Shown here piece by piece: positions 3,159 through 64,000 of a stretch of DNA of 64,000 nucleotides. The notes beneath the pieces were generated by a model. The model was not told the origin of the DNA. It saw only the letters and a program-made list of their open reading frames with translations, and did no database searches. Position 1 is the first letter of the stretch. Each line of letters opens with the position of its first letter. Made by a program: the position numbers and the translations under genes. The DNA is from Pelomyxa schiedti (taxonomy: Eukaryota; Protista; Evosea): positions 1 through 64,000 of the forward strand of contig JAHLWZ010000276.1 of the NCBI GenBank assembly GCA_020536535.1, in the 5' to 3' direction.

Positions 3159-3574
3159 AAAAAGATTTCTTCGTCAGTGTGATGAAGCGAGGTGGATGGA
3201 CGGGATCAATGCAGAGAGCCATTGTGTGATACAGTCGTTGACTTGGTCATCTGTTACTTGTACTCCTGTTGTTGACGTGATTGCAGTACAGCACCCAAAC
3301 AGAAACTTCACAATCACTGTGAATGGAACCCGGTTCTCCTCTGGTTCAATGAAAAGGTTAGTCTAGTGGAATTGTGAATGTGCGTGGGCAGTGACAACCA
3401 AGGATTGAGAGGCATGACTGCACAACAAGGAGCATGAGGTCTGCCGCGGTTCTCAATTGGGAATCAATTGTGGANNNNNNNNNNNNNNNNNNNNNNNNNN
3501 NNNNNNNNNNNNNNNNNNNNNNNNNNNNNNNNNNNNNNNNNNNNNNNNNNNNNNNNNNNNNNNNNNNNNNNNNN

Positions 3575-13654: not shown

Positions 13655-15880
13655 TCAGTCTTCTGTGACAGTGTTGCCTCCTGCATATTCTTGAATCATA
13701 TTGCTGGACTGGGGTGGCCCGCAATCATCACACCAAGATTCGTTTTTAGCTGGAGAGTTGTGTGGTGTCATCAGAGGCTCCTTCCTCTCTAAGTCCAGTT
13801 CACTGTGAATGTCATGGTGCGGGGTGGTTCTGGAGGGTTTGGGTAGGTCCATATGTTCATCATCTCACCAGTTCTGGAGGGCTTGGCAAAATAATCTTGG
13901 GGCCTTCCTACATAGCCGGTGACCTTTGTTGTTGTTGTCAGTCAGTGTTTGGTTGTTGATAATAATAACTTATTTGTTATGTGTTGGTTAAAATGGAAGG
14001 GAGGGAGTAACTGAGAGAAGTGGTGTGGTGGCAGCTTACTTGGTACCGCATTAGCTTGTTCAGCCTCTTCACTTTCACTTCTATTTTCTCAGGTGCACAC
14101 TGGAGCTTGAACACAAGTGATGATCCTTCACCGGGGCATTGTGGCCACGTTCCACCAAAACGACTGCACCCTTTCGGAATTTCAACACACAAGATGATGG
14201 AATCAGTTCCCGCCGTCATTGGAGTCATGAACACCGGTTGTGGTTTTTTCACATCATCGGCAGCTCTTCCTCCATTTGCGTTTGCATTTTCATGATCATT
14301 TCCAACATCACTTCCGCTGGGATGATCCGCTGCCGTCTGTAGTTGTTGTATGTTAGAATGCGTGCAGGCGGATATTAGAGAGCAGAAAGATAAATCGGAG
14401 ATAGATGGAGAGAAGGGATATTACTTGTCGTACTTCAACTTCAAATTCTTGGGTGGTTCGATTGCTACTACTAGTTGTTGATGATGTACTTACAATTTCA
14501 GTGTGAGGAACTTGTTCTGCTGAAGAAGATCGCAACGGAGCAGCCAGATCAGCCACCACCATTTTTGCTGTTTTCTTGTGGCGAACGGTCCCTGATGTGG
14601 TGGCAGCAAAAGCAGCAATCCTCTTTTTTAAAAACAACTGTTAGAGAATTATATTATACGGCATATATATGAATTACCGGTTTCTTGGGTGTTGGTTCAA
14701 CATATGCACAAACAGAAGCAGAGGAAGTAATTGCACTCAATGCCTTAGCCGCATCGTCATCATCATCAGACGGCTTGACTTGATTACTCTCAAGCTGATC
14801 ATGATACTTTTGATGTGCCTTCACCAACTCGTCTTTGCTGTGTGATTTCTCAGCCTGAAGGGCAGTGATCTTTCTTGACATCTGAGAATTCTGCTCTTTA
14901 AGAAGTGTATTCTCCTTTTGCAATTGAGTCTGCATGCATGCCTGCCGGAGAGGTTAAAAATGTGCCTGACTCCACAAGTGAAACGGGTTTTTTTTTTCAA
15001 TTAGTATGTGTGGGAATATTGAGAAGTGACTGAACAACTCACGTTGCTATTATTATTATTACTGTCAATATTGTTTTGTTGCTACTACTACTGCTACGCA
15101 AAAGAGTGAACAATACCAGTTTCTTTATTTCTTCATCGTTGTCTGCAGCCTTTGAATTCAAAGCAATTACAGTGTCATCGGCTTTCTTTTTGGAAGTCAT
15201 GAGAGACTCGAATTCTTTCGTGAGTTGCTGATAGGAGTCTTGTGCCTGTGCAAGTTCATCGTTGCGGTGTGCGACATCTCCCTCGAGGCCACCCACCTTG
15301 ACCTTCAGAGCCCCGTTCTCCTCGTCCGACTTTGCGAGCTGGCTCTGCAGATTGGCCAGTTCATCCTTCATTGACTGAGCCATCTTCTCCAGCACCCCTC
15401 TCTCGGCCGCGAATGTTTCTCGCGCCGCATCCCGCTTCGCTTCTTCCCTCGCGCTCCGGCACCGTCTCTCACTCTCCTGGGTTATCAAAGAACAGCACTC
15501 CTCCTGGTGCTTGAGGCTCTGCTCGACCACCGCCTTCTCGTCCTTGATGGCGTCCCGCTCCTCGGTCACCTTGGCCAGCTTCCCCTTCGCCGCGCCCAGC
15601 TCCCGCGTCGCGCGCTCCACCACTCCTCGCTGTGCTTGGCATCTGCCGCCGCCGCCGCCGTTGGCGCCGCAGCTGCTGACGGGGCCGCCTGGGCCGGTGC
15701 CTTGTGGCGGAGCCGCTTCTCGAGCGCGGTCACCTCCTCCTCGAGCCTCTGCTTCGCCTCGATGGACGACATCGTCGCGGCGCTCGCGGCACGTCGCTCC
15801 TTGATGATCTGGGAGACGAGGGCCGCGATGGCGAGGGTGCGACCACAGTTACGATGTCTTCTTCTACGCCCAGCCGCGGA
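13655..15880 (-). CDS. Coiled-coil protein, multi-exon; apparent 1-nt frameshift near 15623
   Basis: Heptad-rich ORFs 15039-15623 and 14654-14935 plus downstream exons. The upstream frame ..KHSEE switches to VVERATREL. Confidence 0.55.
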
Positions 15881-15931
15881 GGTGGTAGTGTCGGTGGGGG
15901 GAAACAACCATCAACATCATATCTGGATCAG

Positions 15932-16081
15932 TGGGCGGTGATTTTTTTCCCTACAAAAAGTGTAACATCACCACCCCGGGCGGTGATTTTGGGCGGTGAT
16001 GATGCACTTTTTGCAGTCAAATCGGATCACCGCCCCGGGCGGTGGTTGAGCACATAAGCCAGTCAGTAAAATCACCGCCCT
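15932..16081. repeat. Seven subterminal GGGCGGTGAT/ATCACCGCCC repeats in both orientations
   Basis: Copies near 15933, 15967, 15978, 15991, 16026, 16037 and 16071. Conserved at 62623-62785 with one extra copy. Confidence 0.9.
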
Positions 16082-16120
16082 GGGTTAACCACAAGAAAAA
16101 AACTTTTTTTTATGTTGCTC

Positions 16121-19098
16121 TTAATCTAACTCAATATTTAACAGTGCTGACAGGCCAGTTAAAGCCACTATTTGTCGCAATAAGCACTCCCAAGTGTTGT
16201 GTGTGTCAGATGAAGAGAGCCTTCCTCGACAACAAGCCTCTTTGAGGCTCTTATGCCATTTATTCATTGCCTCAGCCAGTTCTTGTTTTAGAATACTTGG
16301 GGGACCATAGAATTCAGCATCTGACCAAGAATGTTCACACCAATAGTGAACTGAGGGGTTTAGCTTTGGGCTAAACAAGGAGTACAAAGCTAACATGTTG
16401 TTCCTTGTGGTGTTCCACCTTTGGTGTATGTCATCTGTCAACCTTTCACAGTGCAGCCACTCATACGCAAAATGCAAAACAGACACAAGATCATCAAGGA
16501 TACTCCTGATTGTCCGGGTCTGTGTGACATGTGGCCGCCACAACACATCCACTTCCTGATCTAACTCAGTTTTGACCTTTGTTGAGAGAGCATCCCAAAG
16601 GTGATCCAAACACTCTGAAACCATCACTTCCTTGGCTATGTTTGCCTGAAAAGTTTTCTTTGGCCAGTGAGATGCACATGTGTTGATGGCAGTCTTCAAG
16701 GCAGTGGCAATTGCTTTATAACCTTGAGACTTCAGCCATGTGTGACATGATGACAAGAGATTCAACATCACATTTGTGAAACAATGCAGAGGATCATACA
16801 CAAGTCGCTGTAAAACTGGCTTGACAAGCTCTTGAGCTTCTGTTAGATGGTAATAAAACTGCCAGATGTCATTCTTCCAGTCTCTCAGTTTGTGCTTCAC
16901 ACAAAACCCACAACCTTCCTTGATGCAAATACAGTGGTCATCACAGGATGCTTGTGATGCACTGGGCATGGCACATGAGGATGACAATGGCACAGCTTGC
17001 ATCCAGTCCACACAGCAACAAGTTCTCACAGGCACATTTGATGAAGAACCATCAGTGAGAGCAACAGTTAACTCCCTCTGGTGAAGAGCATCCAGGAAAG
17101 CATCAAAGTGAATCTGTGCCTCAATGTGATGCAAAAGCAGGGAATCACAGGAACCATCCTGTTTCAACATTGCTATTGTTCCAAAGCAAGCTTGGTGTTG
17201 AGGAGATTTGACAGAGCCAAGACTCAAACCATAGAAGAGATTTTTTCCCCAGAGCTGCCTCCCATCAATGAAGCCTTTCACCAAGATATGGCCCAAACCA
17301 TGAAGATACCACAATCTGTGAGAGGAAGCATGTCGAACAAGAAAAGAAAACATTGCTGAACAAGAGAGAAATGCACCATTTAAGGGGGTTTGCAGTGGTG
17401 CTATATGGGCCCAATCACTGTGCTCATGCAAACATTGCTGTATTGCCTTCTTCCTCTGCTTCAGCTTCAGTAGTTTACACAAACACACCCATTTTGGATT
17501 TGACAAATTCATCCGCAGCTTCACAAATGTACTTTTTTGGATTTCAGCAATTCGCTCACTTTTTTTCTCTGGTGACCTACAGCTTTGGGCATGTTTCCAA
17601 GTTGTCTCAGAGGAATCTCAAACAAAGATTTAACAAGCTTTTTTTATGTTTTAAGGCAAAACTTTTCAAGCATACGTTGATAAGTTTGTGTCACAGACTG
17701 TTGGAGTTCAGCATTGGTTTTTTCCAGCTGATCATTGTGTTGTCTCAGACCTTGCAGTACAACTTCATACTCTTTTTGCTTTTGGGCCAGTTGTGTTTCA
17801 TACCTCAAATGTTGGGTGTGAAGCTCTTTTTGCAAATCCTCCACAGTGCTTTTCAACATTTGTACTTGATCTTGAAGTAAATGCCTCTCTTGGGAGTATT
17901 GAAAAGAGCAGAAACGTTGAGTTTCCTCTCGAGTCTTCTGTAGCATCTGTATTTGTTCATCATGAAGGGTCTTCAGATGTTTTTGTTGTTGCTAAACAAT
18001 GTTACTAAATAAATGTGTAAATGGAACTTACTTTCAACTCAGTTAAGCAAAGCTGTGTTGTTTCAAATTGGGAACTTTGAGATGATTTGAAGTATGCATT
18101 GTATTGCTGGCGCAGTGGAAGTTGGGATGAAGGGACTGCAGGGGGATCTTCAGTCTTGGAGGTTGGAGTGGATGAAAATGGTGAAAGAAGTTTATGATGG
18201 GGACGGAAAAGATCTTTAAGAAGGAGTGAGAATGTGCTTTCTTGTAATAAAAGATGTGTGGTATCATGAATTTCCTCAATGTCAGTGACAGGCACATTTC
18301 TAAGAGCACCAGCTTTAGTAACAACCTCCATTGTCAGCAATTCTGATGTGTCAGGTAACTTCTCAGCTGCCTCAGAGCTGAGCAATGTGATGCGAAACTC
18401 CCCCCAAGTGTTTGCAACAAGGTGCTTGTTCTCCCTCTTTTGATTTTGAAAGATCTTCACAACATAATGTGGGGATGCATATCCCCACACTGTTACTTGC
18501 TGTCCCACAGTGAGAACAACAATGTCAAAAGGAGTTTTTCTCTCCACCTTCACTGATTCCCAATACTTCACCCCACTCTTTGCCACACTTTTGATTTTTT
18601 TTTCTCCACTCCAGAAGTACTTTTTTTGGGGGGTGTATCTACACACCTCATCCTTTTCTTTTTTGTTCTTCTTTTCTTCAATTTTCATCTTTGCCTCTCT
18701 TTCCTTTTTTTTGGTTTCAATTAGTTCTCGCAATGCTGTTGCAAACTTTTCTCCTTTCTCCCATTTGACTTCACCATCTTTGTTCAAACACAAAGACAAC
18801 AGGTGATCTAATTCTGAGACAGCACATTTCACTCCCTTCATTTTTGGTATCCAATTCATGTCAGGTTCCTCATCTATTGCAATACAGTGCTCAAGGCTAT
18901 TGTACCAAACTAGATTTAAATTAGTAATTGTTACTTGTGAAGAGATATGACCTGTTGATTCAGATGATGTTGTAGAGGTACAAGAACTTTGCTCATTGGT
19001 GTGACATGGGTTGTCCTGACTTACAGAGTCACTTGCACAAAGAGAAGGAGTATCTTCATTCAAAAAGTCTTCTGGTAACTGAACATCAACCACCTGTT
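16121..19098 (-). CDS. BAH-like + coiled-coil + RAG1/Transib-type DDE transposase (spliced; 5' part in gap)
   Basis: Motifs KGFIDG (D1), CVDW (D2), CGFC, DPLHC, PSVHYWCEH and QELAEAMNK (E) occur in RAG1/Transib order. Introns 17992-18031 and 17617-17675 join the ORFs in frame. Confidence 0.8.
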
Positions 19099-19203
19099 TC
19101 AAANNNNNNNNNNNNNNNNNNNNNNNNNNNNNNNNNNNNNNNNNNNNNNNNNNNNNNNNNNNNNNNNNNNNNNNNNNNNNNNNNNNNNNNNNNNNNNNNN
19201 NNN

Positions 19204-19438
19204 TGGTAGTAAGGTGTATGCTGCGTATTGCAGCCTGTACCTGCTCTGAACCAAAGTAGGCCTGTGAAGTGACAAGTGGGGGGTAGGTGTTTAGCAGTGC
19301 CCGGCCCTTTTGCAAGGCATCTTCGGATATGTCATACAAGTACACGGAGTAACCATGCAAAGCACACTGAAGTGCAATCTGGGTGCCCAGTAAGCCGGCA
19401 CCCACCACAACTACGGTGTGTATATCCTCCACGGTCAT
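19204..19438 (-). CDS. 3-hydroxyacyl-CoA dehydrogenase, N-terminal NAD-binding fragment (cut by gap)
   Basis: VVVVGAGLLGTQIALQCALHGYSVYLYDISEDAL is the family Rossmann motif. Confidence 0.8.
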
Positions 19439-62608: not shown

Positions 62609-64000
62609 CATATCTGGATCAGTGGGCGGTGATTTTTTTCCCTATCAAAAAGTGTATCATCACCGCCCAAAATCACCACCCGGGCGGTGATTTTGGGCGG
62701 TGATGATACACTTTTTGCAGTCAAATCAGATCACCGCCCCAGGCGGTGGTCAAGCACATAAGCCAGTCAGTAAAATCACTGCCCTGGGTTTAACCAAAAG
62801 AAAAAAACTTTTTTTTAGGTTGTTCTTAATCTAACTCAATATTTAACAGTGCTGAGGGGTTAAGCTTTGGGCTAAACAAGGAGTACAAAGCTAACATGTT
62901 GTTCCTTGTGGTGTTCCACCTTTGGTGTATGTCATCTATTGCAATACAGTGCTCAAGGCTATTGTACCAAACTAGAACTTTGCTCATTGGTGTGACATGG
63001 GTTGTCCTGACTTACAGAGTCACTTGCACAAAGAGAAGGAGTATCTTCATTCAAAAAGTCTTCTGGTAACTGAACATCAACCACCTGTTTCAAATTTACC
63101 ATCAATTTATTGGAGAAAGAATTAGACAAGTGCAGCAACAGGTGCAGCGACGGGTGTGGTGATGGATGTGACGACGGGTGTGGTGACGGGTGCGGCAATG
63201 GGTGCGGCGACGGGTGTGGCGATGGGTGTGGTGATGGTTGTGGCGACGGTTGTGGCGATGGGTGCAAGGTTTACCTCTTTGTATTTTTCAATTGAATTCA
63301 CAGACAGCAAAGAAGAACTTGATGAGTTTCTATCACCAGAGTTGTCACTATCAACATTTATGACATCTACACAACATTAATATATTAAAATCAAGGCTGC
63401 ATTACCATCATCTTCTGATGAAAAGGCTTCATCATCCAAGCTGGAAACAGGGTAATCCCTTGGTGATCCAAAATGTTGAAGTGAGGTTGAGGGTGCATGT
63501 CTATGTGGTACACGAAGAGCATGTGAATGTTTAGGTTTTTTAGGTTCTGGTGGCTGAATTGATTTTGAAGATTTGGGTTTTTTGGTTTTATATTTTGAAG
63601 GTTTTTTTTGTTGATTTTGGGGGTATGTTTCTTTTTGGTTGAGAGGAAGCAGGTGCTGCTGATTGTTTGTTAGCTAAAGGGGACAACACTGTAGTAGTGT
63701 GTGTGGCACCTGTTGGTAGCAATCCAGTTGAAGTACCCTTTGTTGCACCCATCCTCACCACACCCGTCGCCACAGTTGTCGCCGCACCTGTTGCCGCCAT
63801 CGTCGCCGCCATCGTCGCCGCCACCGTTGCCACCATCGTCGCCGCCATCGTCGCCGCACCCGTCGCCACCATCGTCGCCGCACCCGTCGCTGCCATCGTC
63901 GCCGCACTCGTCACCACACCTGTCGCTGCACTTGTCACCAATGTTGTAGCTCCCCCCATGGCAGCCACCACACATTTCGCTGCCGCACCAGTCGCCACCA
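62609..64000 (-). mobile_element. Internally deleted non-autonomous copy of the RAG1/Transib-like element (runs off window)
   Basis: Colinear patches match 15918-16150, 16351-16436, 18870-18914 and 18983-19103, then the copy continues into sequence missing from copy 1. Confidence 0.92.
63130..64000. repeat. Two oppositely oriented 12-bp minisatellite blocks (GGCGACGGGTGY)n
   Basis: 63140-63266 reads ggcgacgggtgt..; 63745-64000 reads the complement ..cacccgtcgcc. Confidence 0.8.

Follow-up and report, generated by a model that had tools for sequence, protein, structure and literature searches.

V(D)J recombination is carried out by RAG1, an enzyme whose ancestry lies in Transib-type transposases. 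An open frame in the genome of Pelomyxa schiedti raises the question of whether an amoeba carries a transposase of this type, as proposed in a first-pass annotation made from the DNA letters. The frame lies in a stretch of 64,000 nucleotides (GenBank assembly GCA_020536535.1, contig JAHLWZ010000276.1, positions 1 to 64,000), hereafter the window; all coordinates are window positions unless a contig or locus name is given. Pelomyxa schiedti belongs to the Archamoebae, and the amoeba-like host supposed at first sight is indeed amoebozoan. We put at roughly 0.7 the probability that the frame is the catalytic core of a cut-and-paste transposase, and that it represents a new, very divergent lineage of the EnSpm/Mirage/Chapaev/Transib (CMCT) clade, nearest to RAG1, Transib and Chapaev and distinct from canonical Transib or RAGL elements.

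The core is encoded on the minus strand by an open frame of 498 codons (16124-17617) that ends in a stop codon at 16121-16123, so that the whole feature spans 16121-17617; it is supported by translation, genome matches, alignment and a structural model. When the minus strand of 16121-18004 is translated, KGFIDG, CVDW, CGFC, DPLHC, LNPSVHYWCEHSWSDAEFYGPPSILKQELAEAMNKWHK and FVKLRMNLSNPKW are all found in one frame, and the aspartates of KGFIDG (17264-17266) and CVDW (17006-17008) occupy exactly the codons first assigned to them. The motif-bearing frame is far beyond chance. The core frame of this copy is unbroken, with every conserved residue in place.

A CMCT transposase is expected to carry a DDE triad on an RNase H fold together with conserved Cys/His pairs. 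In an alignment of 42 sequences, D118 (minus strand, codon 17264-17266), D204 (17006-17008), C236 (16910-16912), H278 (16784-16786) and E449 (16271-16273) are invariant where covered, and C231 (16925-16927), H424 (16346-16348) and H429 (16331-16333), as well as W205 and E446, are nearly invariant. Three residues before H278 there is D, C or E, giving a '[C/D]xxH' motif, and most relatives have CxxC at the C231/C236 pair, as RAG1 does. In the structural model, D118 is placed in strand 111-121, D204 right after strand 192-203 and E449 in helix 446-459. The mouse RAG1 residues are D600, D708 and E962, with C727/C730 and H937/H942 (PMC4914335). Between Pelomyxa and mouse RAG1 the spacing is 86 versus 108 from the first to the second aspartate, 27 versus 19 from the second aspartate to the first cysteine, 5 in both from histidine to histidine, 20 in both from the second histidine to the glutamate, and 245 versus 254 from the second aspartate to the glutamate (PMC4914335). 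The proposed triad is carried by an RNase H fold, both pairs of C..C/H..H zinc ligands (C231/C236 and H424-x4-H429) are conserved, and triad and ligands follow each other as in RAG1, at similar distances (H-x4-H-x19-E). C231/C236 and H424/H429 would together bind zinc, and by analogy the enzyme would be catalytic and may use nick-hairpin chemistry.

The fold was assessed with an AlphaFold2 model of the core built on the 42-sequence alignment (pLDDT 93.6, pTM 0.90). Foldseek against the PDB returned RAG1, BbRAGL or HzTransib at all of ranks 1-49 (E 4e-10 to 8e-4), and the P element first appeared at rank 50 (E 6.6e-3). A Foldseek-independent search of 48,161 chains gave the same order of matches; in that search retroviral integrase cores align to core residues 111-497, which marks the RNase H fold and the C-terminal catalytic helix. 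The three-dimensional architecture of RAG1 and Transib (DDBD, pre-RNase H, RNase H, ZnC2/ZnH2 insertion and CTD) is present. Among solved structures, therefore, the best matches are RAG1, BbRAGL and HzTransib rather than P, hAT, Kolobok or Chapaev. Prediction of the core as a homodimer scored 0.17 (mark 0.32), which speaks neither for nor against dimerisation.

An exhaustive profile search of 1.84 billion representatives recovered 105 related proteins, 39 of them at E<=1e-10, and the ten relatives that were traced come from run assemblies (Logan), from ENA and JGI metagenomes and, for the Pelomyxa protein, from NCBI. The alignments used as queries comprised 5 sequences (A1), 42 sequences (A2), the C-terminal motif region (A3) and the 15 most distant sequences (A5). 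A word-index homology search with A2 returned close relatives only, and a search of viral contigs and prokaryotic genomes with A1 returned no relatives. One relative, P0008, is a stand-alone protein of 492 amino acids with an ATG start, from another eukaryote. It is encoded in a 3.7-kb element with ends TCACATCTGGCTCC.., which was found at two sites at 99.8% identity, on contigs with F-box and histone genes.

The core belongs to a repeated element. The core protein has 78 matches in the 52-Mb Pelomyxa schiedti assembly, the closest at 100% and the most distant at 26% identity. In the DNA itself, many genomic copies start matching exactly at 15918, and in the upstream direction the repeat family can be followed as far as 19090 at least. 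A terminal inverted repeat (TIR; 15918-15953, CATATCTGGATCAGTGGGCGGTGATTTTTTTCCC...) forms the 3' end of the window copy, as defined by the copy boundaries and by an inverted match to the other end at contig position 64282. That other end is supplied by an internally deleted, non-autonomous copy with both TIRs on the same contig (62609-64000, continuing past the window as far as contig position 64282). Compared with each other, the ends form inverted repeats of ~36 bp, CATATCTGGATCA(G/A)TGGGCGGTGATTTTTTT(T)CCC, and their 23-bp core has 70 genomic matches versus 0 for a reversed control. Inside the 3' end, 170 bp are occupied by a subterminal array (15918-16090) in which the 9-10 bp motif GGGCGGTGA(T) is repeated six times, three times forward, twice in reverse and once as a variant. 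A sister subfamily (53% protein identity) is represented by a complete 4.1-kb element, C791:90180-94276, with perfect 18-bp TIRs (GCATAACTGGATCATGGG) and its own subterminal array (motif GGGGCGAAGG), analogous to that in the window. Farther lineages with intact frames occur in the same genome, namely L042 (599 aa, ~20% identity; 21% in A1, 17% in A2) and P0012/Pelo_15944. These results show a multi-copy TIR transposon, many copies of which are internally deleted, and which is also present in RNA.

Activity of the element had been considered possible. Several fragments elsewhere are 97-100% identical to the window copy over short stretches, suggesting recent amplification. At a 100-N assembly gap (19104-19203) the window copy loses its 5' TIR and the rest of its 5' part, in all at least ~1.2 kb, and the sequence past the gap is unrelated to the element; the claim of a potentially active element fails for this copy. 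In the C791 copy the coiled-coil region is interrupted by an in-frame stop and probably also by a frameshift, and the assembly is without any complete autonomous copy of the window subfamily. Potential activity is thus a description that fits the family at most.

Assignment to the neighbourhood of RAG1 and Transib has to be weighed against several results that speak the other way. No Pfam family was found for the window core or for any of the 42 long relatives. Profile searches of all PDB sequences with the four alignments never listed RAG1 or HzTransib, even at E 10, and phmmer with the single protein against the same sequences found no RAG1 or Transib. The proposed equivalence of the modelled triad with that of RAG1 is drawn from residue order and spacing, from the secondary structure around the residues and from the global match. 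In a shape search of the ESM Atlas, Transposase_21 (CACTA) clusters reached TM 0.69-0.71 (over 426-442 residues) versus 0.68 for RAG1; the best match was an unnamed cnidarian cluster (TM 0.73), and a DUF1280 cluster reached 0.66. Since Transposase_21 is as good by shape, shape alone cannot separate Transib from CMC. The C(2)C and H(3-4)H motifs are found throughout the CMCT clade, most members of which also have CA..TG termini and target-site duplications (TSDs) of 2-5 bp (PMC12730594). The motifs that had been quoted are thus common to the whole clade and alone are no pointer to RAG1/Transib.

The element ends were compared with those of the CMCT clade and of Transib. Termini read CATATC..GATATG, CATAAC..GTTATG and CACATC..GATGTG, all with the 5'-CA..TG-3' of the CMCT clade, and the window, C791 and P0008 ends together give a family-wide terminus 5'-CA(Y)A(W)CTGG... 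Canonical Transib is recognised by TSDs of 5 bp, by its preference for GC-rich targets and by a terminus of the form CACAATG-23-AAAAAAATC (PMC1131882). The Pelomyxa termini begin with CAT, versus the CAC that is invariant in Transib and in recombination signal sequences; the distant P0008 element does begin with CAC. The Pelomyxa TIR has a T7-8 run at positions 25-31, in the sense opposite to AAAAAAATC, and the Transib arrangement of a ~38-bp TIR with CAC heptamer, spacer and A-rich nonamer is not found in the Pelomyxa TIRs.

Target sites were scanned for TSDs of lengths 1-8 at boundary shifts of -3 to +3. The nine bounded insertions comprised six of the window subfamily (including an 88-bp mini-copy), the C791 element and two of the P0008 element. 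No direct repeat of >=3 bp was observed at these nine insertions in any register; there were trivial palindromic dinucleotides only, and the sole candidate, GC, is indistinguishable from the TIR. Thus neither the 2-5 bp TSD of the CMCT clade nor the 5-bp TSD of Transib is seen at the nine insertions. The outermost bases of the P0008 element are complementary (T...A) and therefore part of the TIR, and by analogy the frequent G...C around Pelomyxa copies may also belong to it. Read towards the element, Pelomyxa flanks are G-rich, with G at -2 in 18/31, G at -3 in 16/31 and no C at -2. One contig, L074 (G000:C3792:400-680), is palindromic, with two identical-type TIRs facing each other and flanks that are exact reverse complements, and this is probably an amplification or assembly artefact. 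Given such a contig and an assembly that breaks at repeats, some Pelomyxa flank pairs could be mis-joined; both P0008-element insertions are clean. Canonical Transib and RAG produce 5-bp duplications (PMC1131882), and a 2026 preprint describes 5-bp, 3-bp and TA duplications within bona fide Transibs (10.64898/2026.08.26.747230). By that account TSD length varies within Transib, and the missing 5-bp TSD is not decisive. In sum, the hallmarks of Transib, a 5-bp TSD and a CAC heptamer, are absent from the Pelomyxa copies.

Unlike shape, language-model features do discriminate among clade members. The RAG1 Pfam families (RAG1_RNase_H/ZnC2/ZnH2) scored 0.93-0.95 with 173/256 features shared, and a cluster with DUF1280 (Chapaev) on 16% of its members scored 0.94 with 163/256 shared. 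Transposase_21 scored 0.86-0.87 (110-112/256) and Plavaka 0.85 (95/256). These scores are leads rather than tests, and the recognition value of the query (2265) is just below the usual mark of 2300. DUF1280 corresponds to Chapaev and DUF1258 to Mirage. A classification of RNase H-like proteins groups DUF1280 with RAG1 (PMC3985635), and a wide-sense 'Transib superfamily' includes Chapaev (PMC4411706), which others place in CMC. The family is therefore placed in the CMCT clade, as a distinct deep lineage nearest to RAG1/Transib/Chapaev, a grouping that corresponds to this wide-sense superfamily. What stands of the RAG1/Transib-type core proposed by the first-pass annotation is a DDE transposase whose best solved structures are RAG1, BbRAGL and HzTransib; recognisable sequence similarity to the Transib/RAG1 core motifs was not found, although motif order and spacing agree, and predicted CACTA- and Chapaev-type structures are comparably close in shape. 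We further suggest, tentatively and as a possibility more doubtful than probable, that the family is a lineage of superfamily rank at or below the split between Transib/RAG1 and Chapaev, occurring in Archamoebae and other eukaryotes (105 clusters, mostly from metagenomes and run assemblies) and integrating without target duplication.

If the RAG1 likeness were due to an architecture shared by all these transposases, of which RAG1/Transib alone have solved structures, the family could instead be a Chapaev-, CACTA/EnSpm-, Mirage-, ESTA-, Plavaka- or Lanisha-like lineage of the CMC side. This would accommodate the shape scores of Transposase_21 and DUF1280 relative to RAG1, the high feature score of the partly DUF1280-annotated cluster, the clade-wide C(2)C and H(3-4)H motifs and CA..TG termini (PMC12730594), and the missing 5-bp TSD, which speaks against canonical Transib. 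It would also accommodate the subterminal repeat arrays. Such arrays are typical of CACTA elements. Yet Transposase_21 is clearly farther by features (0.87, 110 shared) than the RAG1 families (0.95, 173 shared), no member has a Transposase_21, DUF1258 or DUF1280 Pfam match, and the N-terminal exons are without a Chapa-type zinc finger or other Pfam domain. PF02992 has no match in the Pelomyxa genome, nor any in the control genomes, and the TSDs of 2-4 bp reported for CMC are likewise not seen. We consider this alternative unlikely.

A P-element-like or hAT-like transposase, from the other 'D..D..[C/D]xxH..E' superfamilies with solved structures, is already disfavoured and highly improbable, as these lie ~7 Z units below RAG1 with fewer residues aligned (Foldseek E 6.6e-3 for the P element versus 4e-10 for RAG1), no Tnp_P_element, THAP or hAT dimerisation Pfam hits and no 8-bp TSD were found, and a Cys2-His2 pair on either side of the insertion domain is characteristic of RAG1/CMCT. 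It is equally hard to credit, and was likewise already disfavoured, that the frame is a host gene derived by domestication, or else an artefact of annotation or assembly: NCBI does annotate part of it as an ordinary gene (Pelo_3569), and the assembly comes from the same study as the single-cell RNA libraries and holds the palindromic contig L074, but dozens of copies, 73-100% identical in DNA, have TIRs in common and come with deletion derivatives, the sister element is bounded by perfect TIRs, and Pelo_3569 itself consists of transposase codons fused with a neighbouring coiled-coil gene.

The Pelo_3569 gene model (13977-17170, protein P0001) joins 222 codons of the transposase core to the coiled-coil host gene to the left of the element and is an annotation chimera. 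Pelo_18516 and Pelo_5276 are element fragments that are likewise annotated as ordinary genes.

The gene structure upstream of the core was examined with two single-cell RNA libraries (X3, X4) from the same study as the genome, using DNA runs X1 and X2 for comparison; RNA contigs were compared with 15700-19095 to find joints. The RNA-library contigs contain 54-59% of the sampled words of the element. All exons are on the minus strand. The most upstream exon present (18952-19103) is cut by the scaffold gap. It is followed by an in-frame 42-nt GT..AG intron (18910-18951), the joint of which occurs in RNA runs only, and by an N-terminal-region exon (18032-18909) with a conserved beta-rich module and no Pfam family. 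A 40-nt GT..AG intron (17992-18031), with a joint present in RNA X3/X4 and absent from DNA X1/X2, precedes a coiled-coil exon of 105 codons (17676-17991, QQQKHLK...TQTYQ), and RNA contigs cover 17652-17991. The exon ending at 18032 is in phase 0 and the next, from 17991, reads QQQKHLK... in frame, so the upstream 'ORF' and the coiled coil are one protein. From sequence and frames, a 59-nt GT..AG intron (17617-17675), overlapping the first base of the core frame, would join the coiled-coil exon to the core in frame (..TQTYQ-H-SSETTWKH..); RNA contig coverage is empty over 17410-17637. The predicted product is at least ~946 amino acids long, its N-terminus being lost in the gap. The Pelo_5276 model, from another copy, has the same order of Ser/Thr/Pro-rich region, coiled coil and core. 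Since the contigs are blind to strand and DNA carry-over is possible, RNA is proven by the two spliced joints only.

The N-terminal exons, coiled coil and core were each searched as separate sequences. The coiled-coil exon gave weak coiled-coil Pfam hits only, and the other upstream exons match no Pfam family. The N-terminal exon contains a module of ~80 residues, ..YTPxKGxxWSGEG..VGQxVxVWG..VVxIFQNQKR (alignment A4), that is common to subfamilies only 22-39% identical; a model of this exon (pLDDT 51) is of too low confidence to use. Two more skips in RNA contigs, of 39 nt (16351-16389) and 248 nt (17404-17651), occur alongside small indels. They have non-canonical ends and were rejected as introns; we take them for transcribed deletion variants.

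Several further features were recorded. Position 16350/16351 is a recurrent breakpoint: it ends a 204-nt deletion in DNA contigs and the 39-nt skip in RNA contigs, and from it onwards sequence is kept in the deleted copy at 62852. Two imperfect GGTGxxGGCGAxGG-type repeat blocks lie in opposite orientation in the 5' part of the element (63125-63265, 63743-63998; L043:3111-4114), with 134-nt arms that are 72% complementary; read on the gene strand, these blocks would give low-complexity sequence rich in Ala, Thr, Val and Pro. The 88-bp mini-copy (L073, G000:C2574:560-850, at ~662-749) holds little beyond two TIRs, one per end type, and is without a flanking direct repeat. Directly past the gap, an unrelated minus-strand frame has its first part in 19204-19438. 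Its N-terminus shows a Rossmann-type GxGxxG (MTVEDIHTVVVVGAGLLG..), and the frame presumably belongs to a dehydrogenase gene of the host; the element may be inserted in this frame or merely scaffold-joined to it. Another 100-N scaffold gap lies at 3475-3574. In the P0008 element (L092:2018-4180), open frames of 115-157 amino acids, one basic and one possibly beta-rich, lie on the opposite strand upstream of the transposase and may represent a second, divergently transcribed gene. A stand-alone transposase gene with opposite-strand frames thus differs in architecture from the single long protein of Pelomyxa.

The modelled core suggests how such an enzyme could work. A helical N-terminus resembling dimerisation and DNA-binding regions is followed by the RNase H fold, where D118 sits in the first strand and D204 comes behind one of the later strands. 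A large helical insertion would be clamped by the Cys2-His2 zinc site (C231/C236, H424/H429), and E449 lies on a helix 20 residues past the second histidine. By analogy with RAG1, HzTransib and BbRAGL, the enzyme would bind the ~36-bp TIRs and the subterminal 10-bp repeats, its two-metal DDE site would then cut the element ends, and the freed 3'-OH ends would be joined to a new site.

The first-pass annotation had expected an amoebozoan lineage to inform RAG origins, which is overstated. Transib/RAGL elements have been reported from bacteria, fungi, plants, ctenophores and a pelagophyte, and RAG1L fragments from 'several other primitive eukaryotes' (PMC9435367; PMC10462144). With such non-animal examples on record, the family has a modest bearing on RAG origins. 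No report of Transib/RAGL in Amoebozoa or on Pelomyxa transposons was found in our literature searches. The breadth and deep branching of the Transib group are still being mapped (PMC9435367), as are new CMCT lineages (PMC12730594). To this the family adds an amoebozoan branch that is invisible to Pfam and profile searches yet confidently RAG1-like in fold. It offers an outgroup-like comparison for the ancient parts of the RAG1 core, namely the DDBD-to-CTD scaffold, the zinc clamp and the His-to-Glu spacing, and suggests that the core can be retained while the element ends diverge in sequence and the geometry of target joining alters. If the absence of target duplication holds, it would be a mechanistic oddity, implying a strand-transfer geometry unlike the 5-bp stagger of RAG/Transib. 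The family also belongs in repeat libraries; at present its fragments pass for ordinary genes in the Pelomyxa annotation. Given its divergence and its unusual ends, we regard the family as a new side branch within the wider transposase group rather than as direct evidence on how V(D)J recombination arose, of moderate interest for RAG origins and of higher interest for transposon systematics and for the unexplained missing target duplication.

Among named systems, mouse RAG1 and amphioxus BbRAGL share 12-14% identity with the Pelomyxa core in structural alignments. The Pelomyxa core frame differs from them in being without a nonamer-binding domain, and no RING or N-terminal zinc-finger domain was recognised. 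No RAG2-like kelch/PHD gene, as expected of a RAGL element, was recognised inside the TIRs; the other coding parts of the element match no Pfam family and, after splicing, are exons of the transposase protein. Transibs such as HzTransib (Kapitonov and Jurka 2005) differ in their ends, the CACAATG-23-AAAAAAATC pattern and 5-bp TSD being absent from Pelomyxa. The Pelomyxa transposase also has a long N-terminal extension with a coiled coil, and the Pfam RAG1 model fails to detect it.

Chapaev is near the top by features (the 0.94 cluster, 16% DUF1280) and is also matched by shape (TM 0.66), and as a group only distantly related to other Transibs it fits the deep position of the Pelomyxa family. 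A DUF1280 core and an N-terminal Chapa zinc finger were not found in the 42 members or the N-terminal exons, the N-terminus of the window copy being lost. CACTA/EnSpm and Mirage resemble the family in shape (TM 0.69-0.71), in C(2)C and H(3-4)H motifs, in CA..TG termini and in subterminal arrays, but differ by features (0.86-0.87, 110-112 shared), in the lack of any Pfam hit and in their 2-3 bp TSDs, which the Pelomyxa family does not show. Of the CACTA/EnSpm traits, the subterminal repeats are present, and Transposase_21, CACTA termini and a 3-bp TSD are not seen. ESTA, Plavaka and Lanisha are recently recognised divergent CMCT lineages, some of them tied to RAG1 by HHpred only (PMC12730594). 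They are fungal and have TA or 3-bp TSDs, and Plavaka has a low score by features (0.85). They carry the same motif set as the Pelomyxa family, and they show that such side branches exist.

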